This document shows positions 1 through 15,380 of a stretch of 64,000 nt of DNA, piece after piece. Under the pieces are notes generated by a model, which saw only the letters and a program-made list of their open reading frames with translations, searched no databases and had not been told where the DNA came from. Location of the stretch: the sequence record KJ019103.1; one strand, given 5' to 3'. The position numbers and the translations under genes are program-made. The first letter of the stretch is position 1. Each line of letters starts with the position of its first letter.

Positions 1-1
1 A

Positions 2-274
2 CTCAGAAGGGATTATCTTTCTAAGTTAGAACAAACCATCCCCTATTGGGATGAGATGAACGACAACCAACACGGAGCCCTGCTCAGTTTTGGGTATAAT
101 CTAGGAGCCGGTTTCTACGGAAGTCCTGATTTTAACACAATAACCCGTGTTTTGCGAGACAAAGAGTGGAATAAAGTCCCCGACGCGTTATACTTGTATC
201 GTAATCCAGGAACTCCTGTAGAGGAGGGTCTATCTAGACGACGGATTGCAGAAGGAGAACTTTGGGAGAGCTGA
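2..274 (+). CDS. Phage lysozyme/endolysin (GH24-like), 5'-truncated by the window edge
   Basis: Frame is open from position 2 (LRRDYLSKLEQTIPYWDEM...). C-terminal motifs ALLSFGYNLG and GLSRRRIAEGELW are typical of GH24 lysozymes. Confidence 0.8.
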   Translation, partial: LRRDYLSKLEQTIPYWDEMNDNQHGALLSFGYNLGAGFYGSPDFNTITRVLRDKEWNKVPDALYLYRNPGTPVEEGLSRRRIAEGELWES

Positions 275-694
275 ATGATTGCACTTGATATATTCTGTGA
301 CTGGTTCACTGGGAGATGGAACAACCGTGCTCAGGCACATTCCAACCCCAGAGGTCAGGCATATGTGATGGCTAGACATGATAGAATATCAGACACAGAG
401 TTTCGATGTGTTTATCACTACCATAGGGATAAGACCCCTTATAGGGACTTTACCCTGAATATCAACGGACACGATAGTGATATTATTCTGTCTGATAAGG
501 AAACCAGGTTAGTTTATTCTTTATATAACGGAGCGTATACCTGTCACTTTGATAAGATAATCAAAGGAAAAAGATATGTATTTGATTCTGTATTAGCGAA
601 TACTTTCTATAAACTTAATGATCAGTGTTTTGATGGAACCCGACTAGTTCGGGGTCTAGAAACCGGTGAGTTCTATGACTTTAGAAAGGAATAA
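275..694 (+). CDS. cpeT: CpeT/CpcT-like (T-type) phycobiliprotein lyase
   Basis: Motif pattern FCDWFTGRWNNRAQAHSNP...TPYR matches phage CpeT-like proteins. Confidence 0.7.
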   Translation: MIALDIFCDWFTGRWNNRAQAHSNPRGQAYVMARHDRISDTEFRCVYHYHRDKTPYRDFTLNINGHDSDIILSDKETRLVYSLYNGAYTCHFDKIIKGKRYVFDSVLANTFYKLNDQCFDGTRLVRGLETGEFYDFRKE

Positions 695-696
695 TA

Positions 697-882
697 TTAT
701 CTAATCCCCACCCACCATTCGCGAGCACAGTTTGCGATTTGTTCTGCGGTGGGGTTTTCTACGCGGATAATCTCAGAGCACTCATCTATCATTTCCTCTA
801 GATGTTTATTGCAGGTAGCGAGATCGTTCATTTGCTTGTGCCTTGATATTTTCGCAGTCATGAGAATACTAACAATGATCAC
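697..882 (-). CDS. Small hypothetical protein; the only plausible minus-strand gene in the window
   Basis: ORF fills an otherwise empty gap and is divergent from the 1023 gene. The true start may be the internal Met (MNDLATC...). Confidence 0.45.
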   Translation of the reverse strand: MIIVSILMTAKISRHKQMNDLATCNKHLEEMIDECSEIIRVENPTAEQIANCAREWWVGIR

Positions 883-1022
883 ATATAGAGTTATTTAGTT
901 CTCAGAGAACTCTCAGTTGTGAGAAATGTGTAATATGATATAATGTAAATATCTTCATATTTTCTTCATATACATAATGAAGAAACTATTAAGTTTCACA
1001 TTGTCGTTTGTAAATTAAAGTT

Positions 1023-1670
1023 TTGGATTCCAATAAGAGATCGATTATTAGAAAACTAGCAGCTATTGCTGCGATTGGCTTCGTGGGTATTCCCGCTGGA
1101 GCTGGTCTAATCCCTACTCTAGAACAGTTTCAAGAAGAAAATGGATATGGTACTGAGGAAGTAGTAGAGGATACAACTGAAGAGGTAGTAGAAGAAGAAG
1201 TAGCAATGACAAGGCGTTGGGTTCTCCCCAATGGAACACATAATGAGAAGATAGTACTCAGTGCCCTACAGGATAGGGGTATTACTGATAAAGTTGCTCT
1301 AGCAGTTGTTTTAGGTAACATCAAACAGGAGTCACGATTCCATTCCAACATCTGTGAGGGTGGTGCAAGGGTCAACTATCATGGTTGTAGATATGGTGGG
1401 TATGGTCTTATCCAATGGACTACTTCAGATAGATATAGAGGACTTGGACACTACGCTTCTAGGATTGGTGGTGATCCTTCCAGTGTAGAAACTCAGGTTG
1501 GATATATCTTCAGAGAGAGGCAGTGGTTAGACATTGAATCATCCCTCAAAAGAAATGGTCATAGTGTTGGTTACTACATGAATAGGGCATATTACTGGTT
1601 GGGATGGGGTCACCATGGAGCCAGAACCCACTACTCACATGACTATGCTGCTCGTCTCATCTTTAAATAA
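1023..1670 (+). CDS. Secreted/membrane-anchored cell-wall hydrolase (phage tail lysozyme 2-like)
   Basis: N-terminal hydrophobic segment, acidic linker, then VLGNIKQES...GGYGLIQWT lysozyme-like motifs. TTG start. Confidence 0.7.
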   Translation: MDSNKRSIIRKLAAIAAIGFVGIPAGAGLIPTLEQFQEENGYGTEEVVEDTTEEVVEEEVAMTRRWVLPNGTHNEKIVLSALQDRGITDKVALAVVLGNIKQESRFHSNICEGGARVNYHGCRYGGYGLIQWTTSDRYRGLGHYASRIGGDPSSVETQVGYIFRERQWLDIESSLKRNGHSVGYYMNRAYYWLGWGHHGARTHYSHDYAARLIFK

Positions 1671-1684
1671 ATAGATGAAACCCA

Positions 1685-2080
1685 ATGAAAGTCCCAGAGT
1701 TTAAAGTCAGTTTTCAGTTTGGTAAGAAGAAGAAAAACCCCCTACGTCTATACATTATAGGGGCAGTTTTGAGCTTTGTTATCGATATGATACATACTTT
1801 TATGAGGGTTCCCACAAAGGACCTCTGGGCTTTGGTTGACGAATTGGGAAAAGAGCTTAGAATAGAAGATATCAATGAGCTCGTTTTGAATAGTCCCGAA
1901 CTACTACAGGCTAGAATCGAACGAGAAGTTGATGGAGCTATTGAGGACCATCTTAAAGAAACAGGTCACAAAGACCCAGAGATTGAATCAGTATTTACTG
2001 AAACACTAAAGGGAGAAACCCCCTTAGGTGGTGAACTAAGAATCCGTGGTAAGTGGGTTCCTGAAAATAAGGAGGACTAA
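1685..2080 (+). CDS. Hypothetical protein with one transmembrane segment
   Basis: ORF in operon context; hydrophobic stretch LYIIGAVLSFVI. Confidence 0.6.
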   Translation: MKVPEFKVSFQFGKKKKNPLRLYIIGAVLSFVIDMIHTFMRVPTKDLWALVDELGKELRIEDINELVLNSPELLQARIEREVDGAIEDHLKETGHKDPEIESVFTETLKGETPLGGELRIRGKWVPENKED

Positions 2081-2241
2081 TGAAACGACACAACAAAGTG
2101 ATGCACCTTATCCGTGAGTCTCTTCGTAACCCAGAAGCATATTCTGAGGAAGAGATTACATATATGAGAGAGCAACTCAAACTACTGGAGGGTGAGAAGG
2201 AAACTATTAAACGGGAGAAGAATCGTGGATTTGGATCTTAA
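2080..2241 (+). CDS. Small hypothetical protein (53 aa, ends RGFGS); not in the ORF track
   Basis: ATG overlaps the upstream TAA (TAATG) with GGAGG upstream; translation is MKRHNKVMHLIRESLRNPEAYSEEE... Confidence 0.6.
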   Translation: MKRHNKVMHLIRESLRNPEAYSEEEITYMREQLKLLEGEKETIKREKNRGFGS

Positions 2242-2671
2242 ATTCATTGGAGATGAGTGTCTTAGGAAACCATCAGTAAATGTTGAAGATATCACAGAGG
2301 ATGTGGTAACTTTATCCAAGGCAATGAAACAGAAGATGGTTGAGTGTAATGGTATTGGTCTAGCAGCCCCACAGGTTGGTAGGAATATCAGACTTATAGT
2401 TGTGCGACTAATGTGTGGTATGACTGTGGAGATGATTAATCCACGCATCAGTTGGACTTCTGATGACAGATGCATACTTGATGAAGGTTGTCTTAGTATC
2501 CCTGGAAAAACACACCCTGTTGAGAGGTATAAATCCATCAGAGTTAAATTTCAGGACATTACAGGACAACATAAATATTGGAAATTATCTAAGATGGACG
2601 CACGAGTGGTTCTACATGAGTATGATCATTTGGAAGGTTTATTGATGGTTGATTACCAGAAGACTGGTTAA
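2192..2671 (+). CDS. def: Peptide deformylase (probable start GTG 2225)
   Basis: All three PDF motifs are present: GIGLAAPQVG, EGCLS and HEYDHLEG. Confidence 0.95.
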   Translation: MRRKLLNGRRIVDLDLKFIGDECLRKPSVNVEDITEDVVTLSKAMKQKMVECNGIGLAAPQVGRNIRLIVVRLMCGMTVEMINPRISWTSDDRCILDEGCLSIPGKTHPVERYKSIRVKFQDITGQHKYWKLSKMDARVVLHEYDHLEGLLMVDYQKTG

Positions 2672-2879
2672 CTTTATAGTATTAACAATGATTATGAAAA
2701 CGAAGAGAGAGCGTCTTGAAGATGTCATTATGGAATATCTAGATGAAGAATACTCGTCTCGACGTATCTACGAAGAATTCTTATCAGTAATGATGAATGA
2801 ATGTCAAGGTAGGGAGGAGGCATCTAAGAAAGCCTTAGAACTTAGAGACTTGATGTTAGGTGATAGACCTGTATTTTAA
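2649..2879 (+). CDS. Hypothetical protein
   Basis: ORF in operon context; the start is probably a downstream Met. Confidence 0.55.
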   Translation: MITRRLVNFIVLTMIMKTKRERLEDVIMEYLDEEYSSRRIYEEFLSVMMNECQGREEASKKALELRDLMLGDRPVF

Positions 2880-2897
2880 CAAAGGAGATTATCAATT

Positions 2898-3209
2898 ATG
2901 ACTAAAGAAGTTAGCGATTTGAAACTCACACGACTTGAGTGTGTGAAGTGTGGCGCCACTTGGATCAATGGTAATCATGTATGGAAGACTGGTAATACTG
3001 GAAGTGAAACCGATCTAGCTGGGTTAGTTTGCAATAAACTAGGTGATGACGATTGCATCAACCCCCTAAGGGGTGCTGAGACAGGTGACACTTGGGAACA
3101 ACGCCTTGGTGACCTGGATACTGGATTCAATGCAAGGAGAGAGCGTCTAGAAGACCAGAGAGCAAGGTTCAAAGAACAATATGGGGAAGACCCTCACTTT
3201 GATGACTGA
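2898..3209 (+). CDS. Hypothetical protein with CxxC (CVKC)
   Basis: AAGGAG RBS upstream; CVKCG...W motif. Confidence 0.65.
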   Translation: MTKEVSDLKLTRLECVKCGATWINGNHVWKTGNTGSETDLAGLVCNKLGDDDCINPLRGAETGDTWEQRLGDLDTGFNARRERLEDQRARFKEQYGEDPHFDD

Positions 3210-3248
3210 TGGGAAATGAAGCGATTAAATAACCCTAATCGCTTCATC

Positions 3249-3292
3249 AAGTGGCACACCCCCCTAGGCAAACCTATGGGGATGCGTTATAA
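3249..3292 (+). promoter_or_regulatory. Sigma70-type promoter: TAGGCA-17bp-TATAAT with upstream AAGTGGCAC box
   Basis: -35 at 3264-3269, -10 at 3287-3292. Confidence 0.65.
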
Positions 3293-3315
3293 TATGAAGG
3301 TAATCAACCAGAGAG

Positions 3316-3531
3316 ATGACACAGCTTAAAACAAAGTTCCGCAGGTATATCGGTGTTCTCACTGAAGCCGTATCTCGTTCCATCGAGTTAGACTACTCAC
3401 AACCCAAACTCTATAAGAAGGTCCGAAGGTTCTATGAGGAACAGGGAGTCTCCTTCACTGGAGACGAGGTAGATGACTACCAAATTGTTATGGATTGTTT
3501 AACTGAAGATCTAGTAAAGGAGCCAGTATGA
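3316..3531 (+). CDS. Hypothetical protein
   Basis: ORF directly after the promoter; overlaps the next gene by 4 nt. Confidence 0.65.
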   Translation: MTQLKTKFRRYIGVLTEAVSRSIELDYSQPKLYKKVRRFYEEQGVSFTGDEVDDYQIVMDCLTEDLVKEPV

Positions 3532-3764
3532 AGACTATTCTTGAGAGAGAAGGTTTCCGTTTCATTGAGAAAGGTATTATTGAACTCAATGGAATGCCAG
3601 ACTACCGACTACAGAAACAAGATCACTATTCCCAACGATGGAATGATGTTTATCTCTTCGATAACAAGATGCAGTGTCTAACTGCTATGGAAGATATCGA
3701 ATATTGTAAGTGGTTGTGTGGAGAACCCTGTTATGTTCGTGATGTTGTTGGTTCCTATTCATAG
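3528..3764 (+). CDS. Hypothetical protein
   Basis: Translationally coupled ORF (ATGA overlap). Confidence 0.65.
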   Translation: MKTILEREGFRFIEKGIIELNGMPDYRLQKQDHYSQRWNDVYLFDNKMQCLTAMEDIEYCKWLCGEPCYVRDVVGSYS

Positions 3765-3995
3765 ATGAGAACTACATCCTTCCTAAGGTATCTTGGAAAT
3801 ACCTTACTAGTGTTGGGTCATTTCACACTCCTTTGGGGGGATACACAGACCGCCTTGACTATCAAAATCATAGGTGGTCTTTCTTTGTTACCCTTTGCCA
3901 TCTCCTGGAAGTTGTGGGATGTTGTGGCACTTGAGTTAATATTTGGAGGTATGGATGTAACCAAGTTCATCCAGTTACTATTCAGCAACTCCTAG
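3765..3995 (+). CDS. Small membrane protein
   Basis: Hydrophobic, Trp-rich ORF abutting the previous stop codon. Confidence 0.55.
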   Translation: MRTTSFLRYLGNTLLVLGHFTLLWGDTQTALTIKIIGGLSLLPFAISWKLWDVVALELIFGGMDVTKFIQLLFSNS

Positions 3996-4029
3996 CACCA
4001 TAGGGTTTCTTTATTCCCTTACAAAGATG

Positions 4030-4073
4030 AAGTGGCGCACCTGATTGGCAAACCCAAAAATATGTGTTATACT
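4030..4073 (+). promoter_or_regulatory. Promoter TTGGCA-17bp-TATACT (extended -10 TG) with AAGTGGCGC box
   Basis: -35 at 4045-4050, TGT-TATACT at 4065-4073. Confidence 0.65.
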
Positions 4074-4078
4074 GGGTA

Positions 4079-4164
4079 GGTATTGGTAGCGTTTTCAGGG
4101 GTGAATAAACTACCAATACCAATCTAAACTCATAGAAAACCACTCCTCATGGGGTGGTTTTTTT
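4079..4164 (+). ncRNA. Candidate ~85-nt small RNA (long 5' hairpin plus terminator)
   Basis: Lies between a promoter and an intrinsic terminator with no ORF; 11-bp perfect stem ggtattggtag/ctaccaatacc. Confidence 0.45.
4136..4164 (+). terminator. Rho-independent terminator
   Basis: aaaaccactcc-tcat-ggggtggttttttt. Confidence 0.75.
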
Positions 4165-4186
4165 GTGCGCGTATAACTAGTGTAAC

Positions 4187-4495
4187 TTGGGTTACATTAT
4201 GAAAGCCGACGCACAACTAGAACACCACGCCAATTGTTGGAATGCTATTCGAAATAATGATAAGGAATACTTTAAGATAGGAGTTGGTGTTTATAAAACT
4301 ATCAACGCTGATAGGGAATACTATATCAATAGTCGTATTGAAACTGATAAGAATAGTGATATATCAGAGATGGATCAAGTGAAAGAAGCCCACTCCAAAC
4401 ACTTAAGTTATTTTATTGGATACAAATCAGAAGTAACAGTTGAAGCTATCAGTAGTGATTGGAAATCTACCCTATACCGGGTTACTACCTGCTAG
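4187..4495 (+). CDS. Hypothetical protein (probable start ATG 4199)
   Basis: ORF after a TATAAC -10-like element. Confidence 0.55.
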
Positions 4496-4527
4496 GGTGT
4501 GTTATAATAGATGAAATGCATGTTGTG

Positions 4528-5526
4528 ATGAAAGCTTTAATCTCTGGTATAACTGGGCAGGATGGATCCTATCTTGCTGAACTTCTACTGAAGAAGGGGT
4601 ATGAAGTCCATGGTATTATTCGTAGAACCTCCTCGTTTAATACAGGAAGAATCGATCATATCTTCGATCAGTTACACCTCCACTACGGGGATTTGACTGA
4701 CTCCCTGAACATAGTCTCTATCATTAAGGAAGTAGAACCTGATGAGATCTACAACCTAGGGGCACAGAGTCATGTGAAAGTATCTTTCGAGGAACCTGAA
4801 TATACAGCACAGACTGATGCTCTGGGGACCCTAAGAGTATTGGAGGCAGTTCGTCTCCTAGGTATGACAGATAAGGTTCGTATCTACCAGGCATCCACTA
4901 GTGAGTTGTATGGGTTGGTACAAGAGACACCCCAGAAAGAAACAACACCTTTCTACCCACGATCTCCATATGGTGTAGCTAAACTCTATGGATATTGGAT
5001 TGTAAAGAACTATCGTGAGAGTTATGGGATGCACGCCAGTAGTGGTATTCTATTCAACCATGAGTCACCACGACGGGGTGAGACTTTCGTAACCCGTAAG
5101 ATTACTAGGGGACTATCCCGTATTAGTACAGGACTACAGGATTGTCTATACCTAGGTAATCTAAACTCAAGACGAGATTGGGGTCATGCTGAAGACTATG
5201 TGGAGGCTATGTGGTTGATGTTACAACAGGAAACTCCTGATGACTATGTGATTGCCACAGGTAAAGAGTATTCAGTGAAGGACTTTGTAGAGGCATCTGC
5301 TGAATACTTTGGTATGAAGATTGAGTGGCAGGGTGAAGGATTGGATGAAGTGGGTATAGATAGATTTACAAAGAAGGTTGTCGTTCGTGTGAGTGACAAA
5401 TACTTCAGACCAGCAGAGGTTGAAACTCTCTGGGGTGATCCCACTAAGGCTAAAGAGGTATTGGGTTGGAAACCTAATCATACCTTTGCTTCCCTAGTAG
5501 AAGATATGTGTATCTACGGTCAGTAA
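4528..5526 (+). CDS. gmd: GDP-mannose 4,6-dehydratase
   Basis: [39 protein letters not shown] and [18 protein letters not shown]. Start placed at MKALI after the TGTTATAAT promoter. Confidence 0.97.
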
Positions 5527-5528
5527 TT

Positions 5529-6455
5529 ATGGAAAAAGGTGCAACGGTAGCAGTATTTGGTTCGGGTGGATTGGCTGGAAGTGCCATCACCAGGGCACTC
5601 AGGTGTTCTTTTGGGGGGTATAAGATTCTTACTCCTAGGAGTAAAGAACTAGACCTAAGAGAACAAGCAGATGTTCGTAGTTGGTTTAAGCATAACAAAG
5701 TTGATTATGTATTCTTAGCTGCTGCCTTAGTTGGTGGTATCATGGCTAACAAGACTAGAAAGGCAGAGTTCTTACATGACAATCTAATGATGCAGTGTAA
5801 TGTAATTGACTCTGCATACTATAGTGGAGTGAAGAAACTTCTATTCCTAGGTACTTCTTGTATCTATCCAGCAGGAAGGCACCATCCACTAGTGGAACAT
5901 GAACTACTCACAGGACTATTAGAACCAACCAATGACGCATACGCAATCGCAAAGATCGCAGGGATCAAACAATGTGACTTCTACCGAGAACAATATGGAT
6001 TTGATGCTATCTCTATCATGCCTCCTAATCTATATGGTCCTGGAGATAATTTCAATGAGGGATCAGGACATGTCCTCGCCTCATTGATGAATAGGTTTCA
6101 CCTAGCGAAGGAAGCAGGTGCATCTAGAGTTGAATGTTGGGGTGATGGGACACCTATGAGGGAGTTCCTATATGTGGATGACTTAGCAGATGCTTCCTTA
6201 TACTTTATGGATAGTTATAGTGAGTCTGGGCACATTAATACTGGGACTGGTAGGGATGTAACTATCAAACAACTAGCGGAGACTATTGCTGATGTAGTTG
6301 GATACAAAGGTGAGATAGGTTGGGATACAACTAAACCCAACGGAAACCCAAGGAAACTACTTGACAGCAGTAGGGCAAACCTGTTAGGATGGGAACCCAA
6401 GGTTAAATTTGAAGACGGAATCAAACTCACATACAACTGGTATCTAGCACAATGA
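5529..6455 (+). CDS. fcl: GDP-L-fucose synthase / ColC-like GDP-4-keto-deoxysugar epimerase-reductase
   Basis: GSGGLAGSA, LAAALVGGIMAN, FLGTSCIYP, YAIAKIAG and WGDGTPMREFLYVDDLA. Confidence 0.9.
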   Translation: MEKGATVAVFGSGGLAGSAITRALRCSFGGYKILTPRSKELDLREQADVRSWFKHNKVDYVFLAAALVGGIMANKTRKAEFLHDNLMMQCNVIDSAYYSGVKKLLFLGTSCIYPAGRHHPLVEHELLTGLLEPTNDAYAIAKIAGIKQCDFYREQYGFDAISIMPPNLYGPGDNFNEGSGHVLASLMNRFHLAKEAGASRVECWGDGTPMREFLYVDDLADASLYFMDSYSESGHINTGTGRDVTIKQLAETIADVVGYKGEIGWDTTKPNGNPRKLLDSSRANLLGWEPKVKFEDGIKLTYNWYLAQ

Positions 6456-7645
6456 CAAAGATTACAAATGGATATACGTGGCCTCTTATGAAGGACACTG
6501 TGACCAAGAGAGATAGGTTGAGGATGGCAAAGTTTATCCTCACCAGTGATAGACTAACACAAGGTAAAGAAGTTCGTAAGTTTGAGGAGCAGTGGAGTGA
6601 GTGGCTTGGAGTTAAACATTCTCTTTTTGTTAGCAGTGGCAGTACCGCTAACCTACTTCTTGTGTCTGCTTGGAAGGAATTATACGAGATCCCAGACCAG
6701 TCGAAAGTAATTGTACCTGCTTGTACTTGGGTAACTAATGTTGCTCCTATCATTCAGTGTGGTTTGACTCCAATCTTTTGTGACATCAACTTAGAAGACT
6801 ACTCCTTTGATCTGGATAAACTACAGGATATTCGTGATGAATATCACGATGACATCAGAGGTATCTTTGTTACTCACCTCCTAGGATTTCCTGCTAATGT
6901 GGAAAAGTTTCGTGATGTTTTCCCCGACGCTCATATTCTAGAAGATGTATGTGAGAGTCACGGAGCAGTCCTCCCTAGTGGTGATAAGGCGGGAACCTTT
7001 GATGTTGGTGGCACATTTAGTTTCTACTTTGGGCACCACATGACTACCATTGAAGGTGGTATGGTGAGTACTAATGATCCAGAACTCTATGATCTAATGA
7101 GAATGAAGCGTTCTCATGGGTTAGCGAGAGAATCACTATACTTTGAAACATACAAAGAGAAGTATCCTGATGTAAATCCACAGTTTCTCTTCGTTACTGA
7201 GGGATATAACTTCCGTAATACTGATCTAGCTGCTGTATTAGGACAGTCTCAACTGAAGAGACTAGACAGTATGATTGGGATTCGTAACAGGAACTATGAG
7301 TTATACCAACAATTACTAAAGAAACACGAACATGACCTTACACATGAGTATGGTGGTTCTTTCTATATCCCCTCCACACAGGGGGATGTAAGTAGTTTCT
7401 GTTTTCCATTTGTAGTTGATAATATGCACTGCTATCTTAAGTTAAAAGAACTTCTAGAAGAATACTATGTTGAGTATCGACCTATTGTGAGTGGTAACCT
7501 CCTACGACAACCATTCTTGAGAGAATATTCTGCTGAGTGTCCCAAGGCAGATATAGCCCATGAAAAGGGACTATATATTGGGAATAATCACTTTGTAGAT
7601 GAGTCTAACTTTCACATGCTAGATGAGATTTTGAGCCAACTTTGA
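6452..7645 (+). CDS. colD: PLP-dependent GDP-4-keto-6-deoxymannose 3-dehydratase (ColD/WbdK-like, DegT family)
   Basis: VSSGSTANLL, LEDVCES and GTFSFYFGHHMTTIEGG, with His at the position of the usual Schiff-base Lys. Confidence 0.75.
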   Translation: MTKITNGYTWPLMKDTVTKRDRLRMAKFILTSDRLTQGKEVRKFEEQWSEWLGVKHSLFVSSGSTANLLLVSAWKELYEIPDQSKVIVPACTWVTNVAPIIQCGLTPIFCDINLEDYSFDLDKLQDIRDEYHDDIRGIFVTHLLGFPANVEKFRDVFPDAHILEDVCESHGAVLPSGDKAGTFDVGGTFSFYFGHHMTTIEGGMVSTNDPELYDLMRMKRSHGLARESLYFETYKEKYPDVNPQFLFVTEGYNFRNTDLAAVLGQSQLKRLDSMIGIRNRNYELYQQLLKKHEHDLTHEYGGSFYIPSTQGDVSSFCFPFVVDNMHCYLKLKELLEEYYVEYRPIVSGNLLRQPFLREYSAECPKADIAHEKGLYIGNNHFVDESNFHMLDEILSQL

Positions 7646-7646
7646 T

Positions 7647-8441
7647 ATGACATTTTCATTTAATCATATGGGCAACTTGGGGCATCTGGGAAACCAGATG
7701 TTTCAGTATGCCGCACTCATTGGTATGGGGGCTAAGCATGGGAGGAGTATTTGTATCCCCCATAAACAAAGTTTTGGGCAATCATACTACCAGGATCTTC
7801 GTAGTAATATCTACGATGCTTTCAACCTCTCACCCAATGGTGTAGGTATCAGTAGGTTCCCCACAGTTCAGGAAGGTAGTTTCCACTTTGATGAAAACTT
7901 ATTTGAAAACCCACCAGAGGAGAACTGTAACCTCTATGGATTCTTCCAGAGTGAAAAGTGGTTCTCACATATCAAAGAAGGTATTAGGAAAGAGTTCACT
8001 CTAAAGGATGAGTACCGGGAAGTGGCACAACTGATGAGAGACCAACTCTCCGGTCAGGTTGTTGCTATTCATGTTCGTAGAACTGATTACCTATCCAATC
8101 CAAACCACGGAGCATTGGGGTTAGACTACTATGAGAAGGCGCTAGAGTTAGTTCCTAATAACCTCACAGTAGTTGTATTCACTGATGATCCAGAGTGGGC
8201 TAAAGAACAACCACTCTTCCCAGATGATAGGTTCTTTGTATCAGAGACAGACTGTCCCTATACAGACCTTGCTCTTATGAGTATGTGTGATTATCATATT
8301 ATCGCCAACAGTTCATACTCTTGGTGGGGTGCATACTTATCTGATAGTAAGAAAGTAATTGCTCCTAAACAGTGGTTTGGGGAACCACTTAAAACAAATA
8401 ACCTGAAAGATCTTTATTGTGATGGGTGGGTGAAACTATGA
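7647..8441 (+). CDS. GT11 alpha-1,2-fucosyl/colitosyltransferase
   Basis: GHLGNQMFQYA, YGFFQSEKWF, AIHVRRTDY and IIANSSYSWWGAYL are GT11 motifs. Confidence 0.92.
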   Translation: MTFSFNHMGNLGHLGNQMFQYAALIGMGAKHGRSICIPHKQSFGQSYYQDLRSNIYDAFNLSPNGVGISRFPTVQEGSFHFDENLFENPPEENCNLYGFFQSEKWFSHIKEGIRKEFTLKDEYREVAQLMRDQLSGQVVAIHVRRTDYLSNPNHGALGLDYYEKALELVPNNLTVVVFTDDPEWAKEQPLFPDDRFFVSETDCPYTDLALMSMCDYHIIANSSYSWWGAYLSDSKKVIAPKQWFGEPLKTNNLKDLYCDGWVKL

Positions 8442-9061
8442 GTAACTTTGCAAGTGCTAAACAGTTTATCAAGAATGGTATTGATACACAACAGGAGTCT
8501 ATCTCTGGTGGTGGCAGCACTATGGCTTCCACAGTTGCCTTCAGATACTTCCTACCAAAGTATATCAAACAGTATGGTATTGAGAGTATCTTAGACATTG
8601 GGTGTGGTGACTGGCATTGGATGTCTACTATCAGAGAAGAGTTTCCTGATGTAGACTATGAGGGATGGGATGCCTCTGAGGATATGATTAATCCCATGAC
8701 TGAGAAGTATGGAACAGAGAATACCAGGTTTGAGGTAAAGGATATCATTGATAACAAGTATCCCAAAGTGGATTTGGTTATCGCTCGTGATGTTCTATTC
8801 CACCTCAAAGAAGATTACCTAAAGAAGGTTCTCAAGAATATCAGTAAGGCAGGTGTGAAGTATCTACTAGCAACTACCTTCCCAGGTTTACCTAAGAACG
8901 AAGAACTCACTCCTAAGAAATATGACGGTTGGGGATTCAGACCAATCAATCTGGATATCGAGCCTTATAATATGAAAGATTATTGTATCAATGATTTCAA
9001 GGAAACCACAGCCCCCAACAGGGGGTATCATCGTCATGTGTATTTGTATGAGGTAAAATGA
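8438..9061 (+). CDS. Class I SAM-dependent methyltransferase
   Basis: SGGGST..., ILDIGCGDWHW and DLVIARDVLFHL. Confidence 0.85.
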   Translation: MSNFASAKQFIKNGIDTQQESISGGGSTMASTVAFRYFLPKYIKQYGIESILDIGCGDWHWMSTIREEFPDVDYEGWDASEDMINPMTEKYGTENTRFEVKDIIDNKYPKVDLVIARDVLFHLKEDYLKKVLKNISKAGVKYLLATTFPGLPKNEELTPKKYDGWGFRPINLDIEPYNMKDYCINDFKETTAPNRGYHRHVYLYEVK

Positions 9062-9210
9062 AGATCGAAATTGAACTCTCTAAAGATGTAGAATACAAAG
9101 GAGAGAAACTAGGTGAGTATATCTGGAACCTAGAAGAGGGAATTAATCATGTTACTGGTTTTGGTGATTCACTTGAGGAATGTTTTAAGGAAATTGTGAG
9201 GTTTAGATGA
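9058..9210 (+). CDS. Small hypothetical protein (50 aa); not in the ORF track
   Basis: ATGA overlaps at both ends; MKIEIELSKDVEYKGEKLGEYIWNLEEGINHVTGFGDSLEECFKEIVRFR. Confidence 0.65.
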   Translation: MKIEIELSKDVEYKGEKLGEYIWNLEEGINHVTGFGDSLEECFKEIVRFR

Positions 9211-9938
9211 AGAAAGTAGCTATTATCTTTATTGGAACAGGTAGATACCTAGAGTTTCTACCAAAGTATTATGAACAGGCAGAAGCAAACCTCTTCCCTG
9301 ACAGACCCAAACACTACTATGTGTTTACTGATGGTGACTTAGGTAATGAACTACCTGACAATGTAACTGTATACGAACAGGAACATCTCCAATGGCCATA
9401 CATCACCCTCTATCGTTTCGGTATTATCCAGAAACACCTAGAGGAGATTGAGAAGGAGTGTGGTTTCCTACTCTTTATGGATGCTGATACACAGGTAGTA
9501 TCCCCTGTATCGTTCGATGAAGTATTCAGGAAGGGAAAACCCTATACAGGTGTTCATCACCCCTGCCACGCCCTGAATATGCCACCACACAATGAGTTTC
9601 CTGGTAGTCTAGAAACTAATACAGCATCCAAGGCAGCATGTAAACCTGGTGATGACTTCTCTGTATATTGGCAAGGTTGTGTATGGGGTGGAAACATAAA
9701 GGGTGCTCGTAAGATTATTGATACTCTCCACCACAGAACTAAACAAGATGAGGAGAATGGAATCATTGCCAAGTGGCATGATGAAAGTCATATCAATAGA
9801 TACTTCCTTGACAACAAAGATAAGGTGAATACCCTATCACCTAGTTTCGCATACCCAGAGTCCTTCACTGAGTATATGGAAGACTACGAACCTAAGATTG
9901 TACACCTAGCAAAAGAGAATTCTAAGTATCAGGTATGA
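9207..9938 (+). CDS. GT6 family glycosyltransferase (ABO/alpha-1,3-Gal(NAc) transferase-like)
   Basis: KVAIIFIGTGRY, YYVFTD, FMDAD (DxD), GVHHP, YWQGCVWGG and KWHDESHINRY. Confidence 0.9.
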   Translation: MKKVAIIFIGTGRYLEFLPKYYEQAEANLFPDRPKHYYVFTDGDLGNELPDNVTVYEQEHLQWPYITLYRFGIIQKHLEEIEKECGFLLFMDADTQVVSPVSFDEVFRKGKPYTGVHHPCHALNMPPHNEFPGSLETNTASKAACKPGDDFSVYWQGCVWGGNIKGARKIIDTLHHRTKQDEENGIIAKWHDESHINRYFLDNKDKVNTLSPSFAYPESFTEYMEDYEPKIVHLAKENSKYQV

Positions 9939-10558
9939 GTTACTTCACAGATTATGACAACGAATTCACAGTATTCGAGGCACCAAAGAACGGGGGAACT
10001 ACTCTCCGTCTTTGGATATACTACGCAGGAACAGGGGAGTTGGTGAAGTCAGCGGAGTCTGAATACTACGCTGGCACTGGAGAAACATACAAACAACTCC
10101 AAGAGTGGGGTTATGTGAATGGGGAATACGAGAACCCCAAGACCCAGATGGTATGTATCAAGAGAGACCCTGTAGATAGGTTTGTAAGTGCCTTCTATGA
10201 TAAGGTAATCAAAGAGGGGAGAATCAAAGTAACCATCGATGAGTTTCTCTCAAACTATGAAGAGATACTTGATAAGTCTACCCTCAAGATGAATGATGGT
10301 AAGACTAACTTCATGAAGTTTCACTTTGAGTCACAGACATATCACTTTGGTAAAGATAGAGATCTATATCATAAGGTCTTTGATATCTCAGAGGTTGGTA
10401 CTGGTCTGAAGAAGTATCTGGAGAGTAAGTGGAATATAGAACTACCTGATGTCCATGCTAGAAATAGTGGTGGTGGTAGAAAGTTTGATCTCTCCAGGGG
10501 ACAACTGAATAAGGTGAAGGAAATCTACACACAGGACTATTATAATGGCTGGTACTGA
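9935..10558 (+). CDS. Sulfotransferase family 2-like protein
   Basis: PAPS-binding-like motifs APKNGGTT and KRDPVDRFVSAF. Confidence 0.75.
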   Translation: MSYFTDYDNEFTVFEAPKNGGTTLRLWIYYAGTGELVKSAESEYYAGTGETYKQLQEWGYVNGEYENPKTQMVCIKRDPVDRFVSAFYDKVIKEGRIKVTIDEFLSNYEEILDKSTLKMNDGKTNFMKFHFESQTYHFGKDRDLYHKVFDISEVGTGLKKYLESKWNIELPDVHARNSGGGRKFDLSRGQLNKVKEIYTQDYYNGWY

Positions 10559-11330
10559 AGGATATATCCTGATAGGTATTGGTGATAGGTATCTACAGAT
10601 GACAGAGAACCTCACTAAAACTCTAAAGAAACATGGAGATAATAGAGGATCCCTAACTATCACAAGATCGGATAATAGGGAACTCTATAGTGAGTGCAAC
10701 ACTGAGTTTGAGAGGAATGGAACTCTACCTAAGATTACCTTAGATAGATACCTACCTTTTGATCACAATATATTCCTAGATGCTGATATGTTATGTGTAG
10801 GTGATACACAACATGTATGGGATCTATTCAGGAGTAGTGATCAGTTTGTTCAACAGGTAGGATGTTTGGGAAGAGATCCTAACTTCCACGCTCACCAGTA
10901 TGAGAGTGAGTTGGGTTTTGAGATTCCTAGAGTCCATGGTGGTTGTATCTACATCAATAGAGAGAAACTAGACCCAGAGTTCTTTCCCTATATGAGAGAG
11001 TGTTTCCTAAACTATAAACAAATATTTCATAATAGTGGTCTAACCTATAAGAATAGTAGACCAGACCAACCACTATACGCTCTAGCAAATGGTATGTGGG
11101 GATTCAAACCTGTGGATCTATACACTAACCCTATCATGACTATTGTGAATGATAGTACCCCACCCCCACTAGATAGTGTGTTCTTCAATAAGAAGAGGGG
11201 TCCTAAGTTAGATACTCCTGTTCCCTTTGTTCATGTATTCCGTGGAGAAGAGGGTATGTCTAAGGGTTATACTAGAGGTGACCAGAAGATGTTGTTGTCC
11301 CATTATGATTACTACCTGAACTATGAATAA
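10545..11330 (+). CDS. GT-A fold glycosyltransferase (GT8-like)
   Basis: LPKITL...NIFLDADML (DxD) and DQP motif. Confidence 0.6.
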   Translation: MAGTEGYILIGIGDRYLQMTENLTKTLKKHGDNRGSLTITRSDNRELYSECNTEFERNGTLPKITLDRYLPFDHNIFLDADMLCVGDTQHVWDLFRSSDQFVQQVGCLGRDPNFHAHQYESELGFEIPRVHGGCIYINREKLDPEFFPYMRECFLNYKQIFHNSGLTYKNSRPDQPLYALANGMWGFKPVDLYTNPIMTIVNDSTPPPLDSVFFNKKRGPKLDTPVPFVHVFRGEEGMSKGYTRGDQKMLLSHYDYYLNYE

Positions 11331-12111
11331 AACTATATGGATGTGTTGGTTCCAGGGTTGGGATAAGGCACCAGAGATTACAGAGAAGTGTTTAGAGTCC
11401 TGGAAACACTACAATAGTGATTGGGATATTGTTCTACTAGATGAATCCAACTACAAGGATTACATCTCCATTGATAAAGAACTACCAGGACTGAAGACAA
11501 ACTATATCTCACTGGGTGATATCCTTCGTCTCTTTCTACTAAAAGAGCATGGTGGAGTATGGGCAGATGCAACTATCTTCTGCAACAAACCAGTGGATTG
11601 GGTTTTGGATTATGAGGATTCTTTCATCTTCACCAGGAAGGATAAGATGATTGCCTCTTGGTTTGTTGCTGCTCAGAAAGATTCTCATGTTGTAGATGTA
11701 TGGTATAATAAGATGTTAGAGTTCTGGAAGTATCGTATGGAAAATACAGATACTTTCGAGCAACAATATGGTTGGATACACGCTTTGTTCCGTCAGTCCT
11801 ACGCTCAGGATAAGGGGTTCAGGGATATTGTAGATAGTATGGATAAGATTGATTGCATGAGTGATGGTCAATCTAGAGGTAAGGGTCCGCACTTCTTTGC
11901 ACCCTACAGTAAATACTTCTACAACCCTATCAGTGACACGATAAAGAATCGTATAGACTCTAAAGTTGATCCACTATATAAGTTGTCTTACAAGGCAAAC
12001 ACAGACTGGAGAAGTCCAGAGAACAGGGGTATCCACCCAGCAGACCAAAAGATTATGTTGGAATATCCAACTAATAGTGAACTACATTATCTACTCAACA
12101 CATTAAAATGA
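11323..12111 (+). CDS. Capsular polysaccharide synthesis protein (Caps_synth/GT32-like glycosyltransferase)
   Basis: IWMCWFQG..APE...C, DILRLFLLKEHGGVWADAT. Confidence 0.85.
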   Translation: MNKTIWMCWFQGWDKAPEITEKCLESWKHYNSDWDIVLLDESNYKDYISIDKELPGLKTNYISLGDILRLFLLKEHGGVWADATIFCNKPVDWVLDYEDSFIFTRKDKMIASWFVAAQKDSHVVDVWYNKMLEFWKYRMENTDTFEQQYGWIHALFRQSYAQDKGFRDIVDSMDKIDCMSDGQSRGKGPHFFAPYSKYFYNPISDTIKNRIDSKVDPLYKLSYKANTDWRSPENRGIHPADQKIMLEYPTNSELHYLLNTLK

Positions 12112-13013
12112 CAAATAAATCATTGGTTACCGGTGGCGCGGGTTTCATCGGGTCACATATTGTGGACCGACTTATTACACTAGGACATCAAGTCGTAGTG
12201 ATTGACAATGAATCCTCTGATGGTCATGATGAATACCATTGGAACAGAAGCGGACAAGTACAAAACCATAAGGCAGACATTCGTGACTACGATGCAATCA
12301 AACACTTGTTTGGTGGAGTCAATAATGTTTTTCACCTTGCCGCTAAAGCATCAGTACAGGCGTCAGTAGATAACCCCCTACCAACTATTGCCACACAGGT
12401 AATGGGAACCGCCAATGTATTGGAGGCAGCACGACAATCTGGTGTGAGTAAGTTTGTATATTCCTCTACTAGTGCTTGTTATGGTAACAACAACCCCATT
12501 CCTAATGTAGAAACGATGAGAGAAGATCCTCTCAACGCCTATGCTATTGGTAAGTTATCTGGGGAACAACTAGTTCGTGCCTATCACTACCTCTATGGTA
12601 TGAAGACGGTGGCATTCCGTTATACCAATGTATATGGGGAGAGGGCAAGACATGTAGGACACTATGCTCCTGCTGTTAGTAAGTTCCTAAAGATGAGAGC
12701 ACAGGGAGAACCCCTAACTATCTTTGGTGATGGTGCCCAACGCCGGGACTTTATTCATGTATCTGATGTAGTCAACGCTAACTGCTGTATTACCTATGAG
12801 GAACTAGAGCAGTGGGGTGAGACCTATAACATTGGTTATGGTAAGAACTGGAGTATCCAAGAGATCGCAGACTCTATCAGTCAGGAACAGATTCACCTAT
12901 CTGCTCGTACTGGTGAGATGCGTGAGACGCTTGCTGATATTGGGAAGGCAAAGGCAGAGTTGATGTGGAAACCAAAGACTGACATCATGGATTGGATTAG
13001 GGTACAACTCTGA
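12108..13013 (+). CDS. NAD-dependent nucleotide-sugar epimerase/dehydratase (UDP-Glc/GlcNAc 4-epimerase-like)
   Basis: VTGGAGFIGSH, YxxxK (YAIGK) and IFGDGAQRRDFIHVSDVV. Confidence 0.9.
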   Translation: MTNKSLVTGGAGFIGSHIVDRLITLGHQVVVIDNESSDGHDEYHWNRSGQVQNHKADIRDYDAIKHLFGGVNNVFHLAAKASVQASVDNPLPTIATQVMGTANVLEAARQSGVSKFVYSSTSACYGNNNPIPNVETMREDPLNAYAIGKLSGEQLVRAYHYLYGMKTVAFRYTNVYGERARHVGHYAPAVSKFLKMRAQGEPLTIFGDGAQRRDFIHVSDVVNANCCITYEELEQWGETYNIGYGKNWSIQEIADSISQEQIHLSARTGEMRETLADIGKAKAELMWKPKTDIMDWIRVQL

Positions 13014-13630
13014 TGCCAGTATTTCAGAAGGACAACAAGAAAGTTCTATTCATCCATGTTCCCAAGACTGCAGGAAGTTCTGTGAATAAACTCTTTGTGA
13101 ATAATGGATATGAAATGTCCTACTATTCTGAGAGTTCTAAAGATCTATACAATGGATTATGTGGACCACAACATCTGGACTCACTTCTATTGGAAGATGA
13201 GTTCCAAGATTTCTCTCAGTTTGATTATATCTTCTCTATCTTCAGAGACCCAGTAGACAGACATCTATCTGAGTTCACCTGGGCACCCTGGGGACTAATG
13301 GGTAGAAACATCTACACACCAGAAAGATTTGATGAGTGGTGTCCTAAGATATTCAGAGCGTATCAGGACTCACCATATAGGATGGATAATCACATTAGAC
13401 CTCAACATGAGTTCTATGTCAATGGATGTGATGTGTATGACTATGAAAATATCAATACACTCACAGAGAAACTATGTGATAAAATAGGTCTAGATAATAA
13501 AGAGATGCCATATGAAAGGTCTTCACGATATGATAGTGAGGATTATGTCATCTATGAAGATACTTACAATTGTATTACTGAATTTTACAAAGGAGACTAT
13601 CAATGGCAAAAGGATTCAGTCCTGTTGTGA
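13013..13630 (+). CDS. Sulfotransferase family 2 protein
   Basis: LFIHVPKTAGSSV and FSIFRDPVDR. Confidence 0.8.
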   Translation: MPVFQKDNKKVLFIHVPKTAGSSVNKLFVNNGYEMSYYSESSKDLYNGLCGPQHLDSLLLEDEFQDFSQFDYIFSIFRDPVDRHLSEFTWAPWGLMGRNIYTPERFDEWCPKIFRAYQDSPYRMDNHIRPQHEFYVNGCDVYDYENINTLTEKLCDKIGLDNKEMPYERSSRYDSEDYVIYEDTYNCITEFYKGDYQWQKDSVLL

Positions 13631-14481
13631 CTAAGGATAAGAACAAGTCCCAGTTCAAACTACAGGGTGTTCCTAGGATTTACTACATCAGTTTAGATGA
13701 TCATGCTCATCGTCAAGACTATATGGAGTCCCAGTTTGAAGACTGGGGCATCACTAACTTCGAAAGAATCTCTGCTCATGATGGTAGAGGTGATAATGAT
13801 CTGAGTGATATTCTCAAAGGATCTTATCCAAAGATGATGACTTCTGGTGAGGTTGGTTGTGTGACCTCTCACCTAAAGGCACTCAAACACTGGTTAGATA
13901 CTACAGAGGATGAAGAGTTTCTCCTTATGATGGAGGATGATTGTGATATCTCCACTGCTGCCCACTGGGGTTTCTCCTGGAGGGAGTTTGTTGGGAATGT
14001 TCCATCCCATGTAGATTGTGTTCAGTTGGCAGTTATCAATCCAGCAGAACTACACATCAAAATCCATATCAGGTTTGTGAATGATTTCTCCACTGCCTCA
14101 TACCTAATCCGTAGATCACACGCGGAGAAGTTAGTTAGACTCTATTGTAGGGGTGATAAGTATAAACTTGATAGTGATATCAAACCCAGAGCAGTTGCTG
14201 ACGATCTTATCTACAACTCTGGTGTGACTCTTGCTATGCCACTGTTTGCATACAAGATCGCACTAGGTTCCAGTATCCATGATGTCCATATCAATACCTT
14301 CCACAAGAGTAGTCATGATGGTATCTGGGAGTTTTGGAAGAAAACAGCACCAACTATTGATAACTGGAAACCATTCTTCAACTATGATGCCTATCTGGGA
14401 ACCCTACCACCCAATGTTGTGGTTCAACAATGGCAGCAAAAACAGGAATCCAAGGCAAAAGATTCAGGGGCTTCGCAATAG
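13603..14481 (+). CDS. GT25 glycosyltransferase
   Basis: IYYISLD...RQDYM, FERISAHDG, GEVGCVTSHLKA and MMEDD. Confidence 0.85.
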   Translation: MAKGFSPVVTKDKNKSQFKLQGVPRIYYISLDDHAHRQDYMESQFEDWGITNFERISAHDGRGDNDLSDILKGSYPKMMTSGEVGCVTSHLKALKHWLDTTEDEEFLLMMEDDCDISTAAHWGFSWREFVGNVPSHVDCVQLAVINPAELHIKIHIRFVNDFSTASYLIRRSHAEKLVRLYCRGDKYKLDSDIKPRAVADDLIYNSGVTLAMPLFAYKIALGSSIHDVHINTFHKSSHDGIWEFWKKTAPTIDNWKPFFNYDAYLGTLPPNVVVQQWQQKQESKAKDSGASQ

Positions 14482-14525
14482 AACATATATATGTTATAAT
14501 ATTTACATTCACCCATGAGGTTATT

Positions 14526-14645
14526 ATGAAATTTGGTTTTACCCCCGAAGCAGAAATCCTAAACGCTCGTTTGGCAATGTTGGGATTCGTTATCGCCGTA
14601 GGCACTTACTTGACCACAGGTCAGATTATTCCAGGAGTTCTTTGA
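14526..14645 (+). CDS. hli: High-light-inducible protein (HLIP)
   Basis: [22 protein letters not shown] contains the chlorophyll-binding ExxNxRxAMxG motif. Confidence 0.92.
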
Positions 14646-14938
14646 TGGCGTTTTCTGTAACACTTAGATCACCTACTGGTGAAGATAAAGTTGTAACAGT
14701 GGAGGGAGATCAATACATCCTAGATGCCGCAGAGGAAGCGGGTGTAGATCTCCCATATTCATGTAGAGCTGGTGCTTGTTCATCCTGTGCAGGTAAGATT
14801 GTATCTGGAAAGGTGAATCAAGAAGACCAGTCATTCTTAGATGATGATCAGATCGAAGCAGGTTTCGCACTCTTATGTGTATCTTATGCCGAATCTGATT
14901 GTGTGATTGAGACGGAAAAAGAGGAAACCCTTTACTGA
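14645..14938 (+). CDS. petF: Plant-type 2Fe-2S ferredoxin
   Basis: [13 protein letters not shown]...LLC. Confidence 0.97.
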
Positions 14939-14943
14939 GACTG

Positions 14944-15093
14944 ATGTCTAATCCAAACGCTCTATATGAAGATATGGAGAAACTGAATGCCCTCTACGAA
15001 GAACTTTGTTGGGGGCATAACGATGAACTACAATTTTCCCATGACGGGGAGAGCATTATTATTACCAATAAAACCCAGGAGAAACAAAAATGA
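14944..15093 (+). CDS. Small hypothetical protein (49 aa) between petF and hli; not in the ORF track
   Basis: MSNPNALYEDMEKLNALYEELCWGHNDEL...; stop overlaps the hli start (ATGA). Confidence 0.65.
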   Translation: MSNPNALYEDMEKLNALYEELCWGHNDELQFSHDGESIIITNKTQEKQK

Positions 15094-15299
15094 CAGTAAC
15101 AACTGAAGACGGCGGACGCACAAACATGTACGCCACTGAACCCACTATGTTTATTGATCCTTCTTACACTGAGAAGTATGGTTTAGAAACACACGCGGAA
15201 CGAGCTGAAACAGCAAACGGGCGTTGGGCAATGATTGGATTTGTTTCTGGTATTGTATCCTATGTTATTACTGGTAACTTCTTCTTTGGTGTTATCTAA
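15090..15299 (+). CDS. hli: High-light-inducible protein (long type)
   Basis: AETANGRWAMIGF motif. Confidence 0.9.
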   Translation: MTVTTEDGGRTNMYATEPTMFIDPSYTEKYGLETHAERAETANGRWAMIGFVSGIVSYVITGNFFFGVI

Positions 15300-15303
15300 T
15301 ATT

Positions 15304-15334
15304 AGAAGGAGGGTTTGATACCCTCCTTTTTTTG
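15304..15334 (+). terminator. Rho-independent terminator
   Basis: agaaggaggg-tttgata-ccctccttttttt. Confidence 0.8.
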
Positions 15335-15340
15335 TGCTCC

Positions 15341-15348
15341 TATAAATA
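15341..15348 (+). promoter_or_regulatory. T4-type late promoter TATAAATA
   Basis: Exact gp55 consensus upstream of the tail fibre gene. Also at 24353, 25118, 26337, 28475, 46455 and 58658. Confidence 0.75.
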
Positions 15349-15380
15349 CCTTTTAGGCACCCACACACCTTCGTATCAAA

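Follow-up and report, generated by a model that had tools for sequence, protein, structure and literature searches.

Synechococcus phage ACG-2014f, a T4-like cyanomyovirus (Kyanoviridae, Atlauavirus), encodes a DegT-family protein whose assignment to the sugar 3-dehydratases with a ColD type of mechanism, rather than to the aminotransferases, is well supported. The gene lies in the final 64 kb of the record of isolate Syn7803US44 (KJ019103.1). We refer to this stretch of 64,000 nucleotides as the window; a window coordinate is the record coordinate minus 153,937. In the window, gmd, an fcl-like gene, the DegT-family gene and a gene for a family 11 glycosyltransferase (GT11) follow one another head to tail at 4528–8441 in both the GenBank and the RefSeq annotation. 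A first-pass annotation, made from the sequence alone, had picked out these four genes and proposed that they form a complete phage pathway to GDP-L-colitose, a 3,6-dideoxyhexose; gene calls, database annotation and family matches confirm all four. A known enzyme family is thus found in a new setting, a lytic cyanophage, and the module to which it belongs is widespread among viral contigs.

The DegT-family protein and its relatives

The protein matches PF01041 (202 bits) and has the fold-type I DegT/sugar aminotransferase fold. The motifs on which the first-pass annotation relied (FVSSGSTANLL, ILEDVCES and GGTFSFYFGHHMTTIEGG) are present in its translation, as is a His in place of the Lys that forms the Schiff base in aminotransferases. 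This residue, His195, is the first His of a GHH motif. In alignment its counterpart in E. coli ColD is the catalytic His188, the position changed in the H188N and H188K crystal structures. Reference sequences for ColD, ColC, WbgN, Gmd and Fcl were taken from E. coli O55:H7 CB9615 and aligned with 120 database homologs and with homologs from 100 loci. His occupies the ColD-188 position in all 222 relatives (GHH in 215, AHH in 6 and SHH in 1), whereas Lys is retained in 11 of 11 DegT paralogs from the same loci.

The His had been taken as the mark of ColD/WbdK. It is present in ColD, but it marks all sugar 3-dehydratases, including E1 and SpnQ, which share the Lys-to-His change (PMC8987622). Since this change alone cannot settle ColD identity, six further tests were run. 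Among Protein Data Bank (PDB) sequences, the four E. coli O55 ColD entries gave the best scores (172–176 bits), followed by a nucleoside diphosphate (NDP)-4-keto-6-deoxyglucose 3-dehydratase (124 bits), E1 (108 bits) and perosamine synthase (94 bits). As a yardstick for E1 we used a protein from a metagenome-assembled genome (MAG; L015:4571-5830, minus strand) that scores 568 bits on the NCBI RfbH equivalog model (NF011936, cutoff 423) and carries a C-X57-C-X-C motif; a second yardstick, the E1-like protein of L068 described below, carries it too. The phage protein fails this model (183 bits) and lacks the [2Fe-2S] cysteine motif, with no Cys in residues 168–316. Sixty positions are at least 95% conserved in the ColD clade, and at nine positions that discriminate ColD from E1 (W88, E162, F182, R213, H215, R219, R250, P332 and N371) the phage protein is ColD-type throughout; at the R219 position, E1-like proteins have Cys where the phage protein has Arg. 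In a careful maximum-likelihood tree it forms a clade with E. coli ColD (99/97), and both the E1/RfbH-like proteins (100/99) and the Lys-containing paralogs (100/99) are separate. When an AlphaFold2 model of the protein (predicted local distance difference test score 92) was used as a Foldseek query, the top 12 matches were ColD chains, with template modeling scores of 0.83–0.89, ahead of perosamine synthase and E1. Residues, the missing iron-sulfur motif, tree and structural search therefore uphold the first-pass assignment to the ColD type.

In the viral contig L068 (11814-13121), and likewise in the viral contigs L051, L052, L076 and L077, gmd and colD are accompanied by a second His-type DegT gene whose product carries an E1-style C-X57-C-X-C motif; the L068 protein scores 375 bits on the RfbH model. 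These clusters also encode a family 10 glycosyltransferase (GT10) and an FkbM methyltransferase. To judge from the motif, viruses may carry E1-type 3-dehydratases as well.

Gmd, Fcl and the proposed route from GDP-mannose

If the protein is a 3-dehydratase of the ColD type, what is its substrate? The phage Gmd passes TIGR01472 (555 bits, cutoff 415) and scores 496 bits against E. coli Gmd (1db3), as opposed to 111 bits against a GDP-heptose 4,6-dehydratase (7us5). As a viral context set we used 80 contigs with a ColD-type relative, drawn from 206 that matched in IMG/VR. The fetched stretch encodes a true Gmd in 69 of the 80 loci; of the 60 loci flanked by at least 2.5 kb on both sides, 56 have one. 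In cellular MAGs, the two genes directly adjoin in 13 of 20 loci. DPANN archaea provide a fused form: in four of their MAG loci, a single open reading frame (ORF) of 741–783 amino acids encodes Gmd together with a ColD-type DegT domain, with an Fcl-like gene next in three of the four and a second gmd often present. These fusions argue that the two enzymes catalyze consecutive pathway steps. The ColD-type gene is thus genomically tied to Gmd and, on the basis of this context, the substrate of its product would be the GDP-linked product of Gmd.

The fcl-like gene is part of the same arrangement. Of the 80 viral loci, 39 have the gmd-fcl-colD trio, with fcl between the other two, and 31 of the 39 also encode GT11. 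Among cultured phages, the ColD-type gene occurs only in ACG-2014f (45 records) and S-CAM7 (4 records), the latter with the same gmd-fcl-colD-GT11 order. Partners from fucosyltransferase families are frequent in viral ColD loci, with GT11 in 33 of 80 and GT10 alongside gmd-colD in loci of the L068 type, company that fits an L-fucose-like sugar. As a separate observation, a 642-kb genome of an uncultured huge phage (LR756502.1; L109:6001-8100) encodes an Fcl homolog (47% identity) immediately followed by a ColD-type gene (33% to that of the window), so the pairing extends outside cyanophages.

The fcl-like protein had been read as ColC, and this did not hold. It scores 312 bits against E. coli GDP-fucose synthetase (1bsv), shares 49% identity with E. 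coli Fcl as against 38% with E. coli ColC, and falls inside the canonical Fcl clade. On the Fcl model NF047922, E. coli Fcl scores 551 bits, the phage protein 420, which is below the equivalog cutoff of 500, and E. coli ColC 304. The equivalents of E. coli Fcl S107, C109, Y136, K140 and H179 are T, C, Y, K and H. A search for residues that separate ColC from Fcl found none, and this catalytic set is shared by Fcl, ColC and the phage protein, so sequence cannot tell the two enzymes apart. Two other short-chain dehydrogenases/reductases (SDRs) of the window were considered as substitutes for ColC and rejected: the protein encoded at 12108–13013 is a GalE/WbpP-type epimerase, with UDP-glucose 4-epimerases and WbpP as its best PDB matches, and that encoded at 57650–58642, ~50 kb away, is an RmlB-like 4,6-dehydratase. 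No alternative 4-reductase was found within the window. Phage enzymes almost certainly make GDP-L-fucose, judging from these family assignments. Since the fcl-like protein is no close relative of ColC, we infer the step to colitose; with no other reductase in view for the ColD product, Fcl serving both branches is the most economical reading, and GDP-L-colitose would probably be made alongside GDP-fucose. The claim that the phage makes colitose, and not just fucose, is therefore supported in part: there is good support for a Gmd-coupled, ColD-type 3-dehydratase, and colitose would be the best reading of the end product.

GT11 had been proposed as the colitosyltransferase of the pathway. Its family holds: the HVRRTDY of the phage protein aligns with the HIRRGDY of WbgN (motif HxRRxDY), to which it is 33% identical, compared with 61% to the S-CAM7 GT11. 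WbgN is, as had been stated, the alpha-1,2-colitosyltransferase (GT11) of E. coli O55, which uses GDP-colitose and tolerates GDP-fucose well (PMC12723683). Because WbgN also accepts GDP-fucose, the donor of the phage enzyme cannot be called from sequence.

On balance, we lean toward a model in which, during infection, the conserved gmd-fcl-colD-GT11 module channels GDP-mannose of the host into L-sugars of the 6-deoxy and 3,6-dideoxy types. In this model, Gmd would make GDP-4-keto-6-deoxy-D-mannose, a step with strong sequence evidence. The ColD-type enzyme, using pyridoxamine 5′-phosphate (PMP) and with His195 as base, is predicted, on strong evidence from sequence, model and context, to take off the C3 hydroxyl, yielding GDP-4-keto-3,6-dideoxy-D-mannose; PMP would be regenerated from L-glutamate, with release of ammonia and without an iron-sulfur cluster or reductase partner. 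The Fcl-clade enzyme, as a 3,5-epimerase/4-reductase, would turn the Gmd product into GDP-L-fucose and most probably also convert the ColD product to GDP-L-colitose by C5 epimerization and C4 reduction. GT11 might then add fucose and/or colitose in alpha-1,2 linkage to a galactose-type acceptor. The other soluble enzymes encoded downstream (GT6, GT25 and DXD glycosyltransferases, a GalE-like epimerase, a methyltransferase and two sulfotransferase-like proteins) may build and decorate a small oligosaccharide, which would be assembled cytoplasmically on either a protein or a precursor of the host envelope.

A fuller version of this model, which we put forward only tentatively, is that a canonical Fcl serves both branches, that both GDP-L-colitose and GDP-L-fucose are products of lytic cyanophages and of at least 200 related viral contigs, and that these sugars cap a methylated, sulfated, blood-group-like GT11/GT6 oligosaccharide on the infected-cell envelope or the virion, altering recognition by other phages or grazers.

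Several observations weigh against these proposals. The DegT-family protein shares just 32% BLASTP identity with E. coli ColD and belongs to a large, mostly viral and marine subclade with long branches to E. coli ColD. The phylogeny that had been suggested as a check groups it with E. coli ColD, apart from the RfbH-like proteins and the Lys paralogs, but no biochemically characterized E1 (DdhC), SpnQ or Per is in the trees, E1 being represented by proteins that match the NCBI RfbH model. For the last steps, the careful tree grouped the fcl-like protein with E. coli Fcl (98/96), leaving E. coli ColC outside that clade, and the Fcl of the ColD-less cyanophages P-SSM2, S-SKS1 and S-SCSM1 are interleaved with the ColD-adjacent Fcl. 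The GT11s of ColD-less cyanophages are likewise 33% identical to WbgN, and the phage GT11 has no special affinity for it. Some of the IMG/VR contigs classed as viral may be cellular.

The placement of the fcl-like protein among the Fcl of ColD-less phages leaves room for another outcome, in which the enzyme makes GDP-L-fucose only and the ColD product is reduced without C5 epimerization, by a host or unrecognized phage reductase, to a D-series 3,6-dideoxyhexose, or is transferred as the 4-keto sugar. We consider this unlikely, yet there are precedents. In C. jejuni, the products of ColD-type enzymes are finished by separate epimerases and reductases in several configurations (PMC10440746), and some viral loci pair gmd-colD with a different SDR (26–27% identical to Fcl) and no Fcl, so the reductase partner is not fixed in the family. 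However, the window offers no further candidate 4-reductase, the adjoining transferase comes from an L-fucose-type family, and fcl, which overlaps colD by 4 nt, lies between gmd and colD in the 39 viral loci with the trio, an arrangement that fits a single three-enzyme pathway.

Database names raise two further alternatives. The S-CAM7 GenBank record, UniRef and JGI name the dehydratase 'CDP-4-keto-6-deoxy-D-glucose-3-dehydrase', a name that has the reaction type right and the nucleotide wrong. Were it to be taken literally, the enzyme would use a CDP-, dTDP- or other NDP-4-keto-6-deoxyglucose, possibly supplied by the RmlB-like 4,6-dehydratase encoded at 57650–58642, and its second-best PDB match is indeed an NDP-4-keto-6-deoxyglucose 3-dehydratase. 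We regard this as improbable: the protein falls far short of the RfbH cutoff, lacks the iron-sulfur motif of E1 and SpnQ and groups with ColD in the tree (99/97). The gene clusters with gmd, to which relatives of it are fused in some loci, and the RmlB-like gene is 50 kb off. The cluster also contains no E3-type reductase or CDP-glucose genes.

For the ACG-2014f gene, RefSeq gives 'aminotransferase' and GenBank 'hypothetical protein'. The first-pass expectation that automated annotation would say aminotransferase was therefore borne out by RefSeq, but not by the sources that use the CDP name; the Prokaryotic Genome Annotation Pipeline goes so far as to name the genuine ColD of E. coli O55 a DegT aminotransferase. 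An enzyme of this kind, making GDP-perosamine or another 4-amino sugar, would agree with the DegT family and with GDP-perosamine synthase as a close structural neighbor, and SpnQ does transaminate under some conditions (PMC8987622). Under such conditions, however, ColD and E1 are reported to have no transferase activity (PMC8987622). Given that every one of the 222 relatives has His where the paralogs keep the Schiff-base Lys, and that perosamine synthases score 94 bits against 176 for ColD, we find an aminotransferase very hard to credit. Least probable of all is a route to GDP-3,6-dideoxy-heptoses of the kind found in Campylobacter jejuni HS:5 and HS:11, where ColD-type enzymes 62–67% identical to E. 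coli ColD act (PMC10440746); we rejected it because the phage dehydratase is a true Gmd (TIGR01472 passed; 496 versus 111 bits), and the cluster contains no genes for GDP-heptose synthesis.

The glycan block and its surroundings

Bases 4400–10600 of the window are 100% identical to the Syn7803US44 record, and 44 further ACG-2014f records match at 95–100%. The four genes open a 13-gene glycan block at 4528–14481 (Table 1), as nine co-oriented genes continue past GT11, beyond the interval of the first-pass annotation. The junctions of the first four genes are 4-nt overlaps or gaps of 1–2 nt, which fits an operon-like, translationally coupled block. Codon differences between the window and one related isolate are mostly synonymous (synonymous:non-synonymous, 81:22 in gmd, 18:8 in fcl, 14:4 in colD and 16:4 in GT11), in keeping with purifying selection. 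A blastn search of all complete E. coli genomes with the colD-like gene gave no match.

Table 1. Predicted features of the glycan block and its flanks (window coordinates), with fusion ORFs from other loci
Feature	Coordinates	Strand	Basis
Sigma-70-like promoter match, TTGGCA-17-TATACT with TG	4045..4073	+	Consensus match only; regional matches fewer than in shuffles
Small hypothetical ORF, 98 aa, directly 5′ of gmd	4199..4495	+	Annotated coding sequence (CDS); no Pfam/NCBIfam match
gmd, predicted to make GDP-4-keto-6-deoxy-D-mannose	4528..5526	+	TIGR01472 equivalog and PDB matches
fcl-like SDR, GDP-L-fucose synthase clade	5529..6455	+	NF047922, 1bsv match, tree
DegT-family, predicted ColD-type pyridoxal 5′-phosphate (PLP)/PMP-dependent GDP-4-keto-6-deoxy-D-mannose 3-dehydratase	6452..7645	+	Residues, tree, model
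GT11 glycosyltransferase (alpha-1,2-fucosyltransferase family), candidate for L-fucose and/or L-colitose	7647..8441	+	PF01531, 98 bits (cutoff 23.9)
S-adenosylmethionine-dependent methyltransferase, probable glycan O-methylation	8438..9061	+	Methyltransf_12/25/31 matches
50-aa ORF	9058..9210	+	Annotated CDS; no family match
GT6 glycosyltransferase	9207..9938	+	PF03414, 76 bits; NF041524, 174 bits (cutoff 250)
Sulfotransferase-like protein	9935..10558	+	PF03567, 29 bits (cutoff 22)
Hypothetical protein, 261 aa	10545..11330	+	No Pfam match; homologs in related viral clusters
Caps_synth/DXD-motif glycosyltransferase	11323..12111	+	PF05704, 141 bits; PF04488, 36 bits
GalE/WbpP-like UDP-hexose 4-epimerase, not a GDP-sugar 4-reductase	12108..13013	+	PDB matches; TIGR01179, 176 bits
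Sulfotransferase-like protein	13013..13630	+	PF03567, 34 bits; RefSeq 'Galactose-3-O-sulfotransferase'
GT25 glycosyltransferase, last gene of the block	13603..14481	+	PF01755, 47 bits
Strong hairpin and T-run, terminator-like	15304..15330	+	Pattern match only
T4-late-type TATAAATA, nearest to the block, just 5′ of the tail-fibre gene	15341		Pattern match only
Gmd-ColD fusion ORFs in DPANN archaeal MAG loci	L010:6876-9224, L012:5735-8002, L013:6545-8875, L016:474-2696		

The promoter-like match at 4045–4073 is possibly the start of the transcription unit of the block. An Rfam scan of window positions 1–17000 gave no matches, wcaG included; in S-SCSM1, a wcaG RNA motif is annotated 5′ of the gmd-fcl cluster (L108:2904-2990). 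None of the 13 block proteins has a hydrophobic segment (Kyte-Doolittle maximum over 19 residues below 1.4), and the block encodes no Wzx flippase, Wzy polymerase or initiating transferase.

Some of the remaining enzymes hint at the form of the glycan. GT6 is the family of the blood-group A/B and alpha-1,3-Gal transferases, and at 7647–9938 the GT11 and GT6 genes are separated by the methyltransferase gene and the 50-aa ORF alone. In E. coli O86 and Helicobacter mustelae, a GT11 and GT6 pair is responsible for blood-group A/B-like epitopes of the form Fuc-alpha-1,2-(Gal/GalNAc-alpha-1,3)-Gal. The two sulfotransferase-like genes (9935–10558 and 13013–13630) are not accompanied in the cluster by a gene for making 3′-phosphoadenosine 5′-phosphosulfate; the syntenic S-CAM7 cluster has an adenylylsulfate kinase (L106:12639-13208), and together these genes suggest a sulfated glycan.

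Two further regions lie at a distance from the block. At 57036–58642, a GT2 gene (57036–57653) overlaps the RmlB-like NDP-glucose 4,6-dehydratase gene (57650–58642; 190 bits to 2hun). This is another way into deoxysugar synthesis, well away from the main cluster; enzymes acting downstream of it are not evident. At 28537–52715 are three very large ORFs in the order 11.9 kb, 5.6 kb and 6.2 kb; the 11.9-kb and 5.6-kb ones are annotated as hypothetical, the 6.2-kb one as baseplate wedge initiator.

What might such a module mean for the phage and its host? The 3,6-dideoxyhexoses are rare sugars, known chiefly as immunodominant O-antigen caps in enteric bacteria and vibrios. If a virus carried a route to one of them, phage auxiliary metabolism would gain a new sugar class. 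With the module conserved across two cultured cyanophage species and at least 206 IMG/VR contigs, picocyanobacteria infected in the sea may display such unusual deoxysugars or release them. If the fuller version of our model is correct, the pathway to 3,6-dideoxyhexoses would be the first encoded by a virus, and Fcl would gain a new substrate range, raising the question of whether an ordinary GDP-fucose synthase can finish colitose. The first-pass annotation knew of no described viral colitose pathway, and our searches of the literature on colitose with phage, cyanophage and viruses likewise found none, with subscription journals mostly outside their coverage. The analysis also corrects two names that are used across the family, 'aminotransferase' and 'CDP-...-3-dehydrase'.

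Comparison with known systems

The phage DegT-family protein most resembles ColD/WbdK of E. coli O55:H7 (2GMS, 3B8X, 2R0T and 3GR9), known also from Yersinia pseudotuberculosis, with which it shares the fold, the His in place of Lys, the lack of an iron-sulfur motif and a gmd neighbor. The PLP-site residues D159, E162, S183, N248 and R250 are kept between the two proteins, as are R219 and R331, arginines that we take to hold the diphosphate in ColD. They differ in the residue before the catalytic His, which is Ser187 in ColD and Gly in the phage protein, and in setting, as E. coli ColD is encoded in an O-antigen cluster, whereas the phage protein comes from a lytic cyanophage and belongs to a separate subclade.

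E1 (DdhC/RfbH) and SpnQ are also PMP-dependent sugar 3-dehydratases in which His replaces Lys. Both require a [2Fe-2S] cluster and a reductase partner (PMC8987622), whereas the phage protein has no Cys motif, scores below the RfbH cutoff and lies on the opposite side of the tree. ColC/WbdJ of E. coli O55 and Y. pseudotuberculosis is an extended SDR homologous to the phage Fcl-like protein and has the same catalytic set (Ser/Thr, Cys, Tyr, Lys and His); unlike ColC, the phage protein is in the Fcl clade and closer in identity to Fcl. WbgN and the phage GT11 belong to the same CAZy family, with HxRRxDY in both.

Finally, cyanophage gmd-fcl modules have been discussed as cell-wall or lipopolysaccharide modification genes (PMC9602691). 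The modules of P-SSM2, P-SSM5, S-SKS1, S-SCSM1 and S-SRM01 contain the same gmd-fcl pair, usually with GT11 and other glycosyltransferases. They have no ColD-type gene, whereas in ACG-2014f and S-CAM7 colD directly follows fcl.

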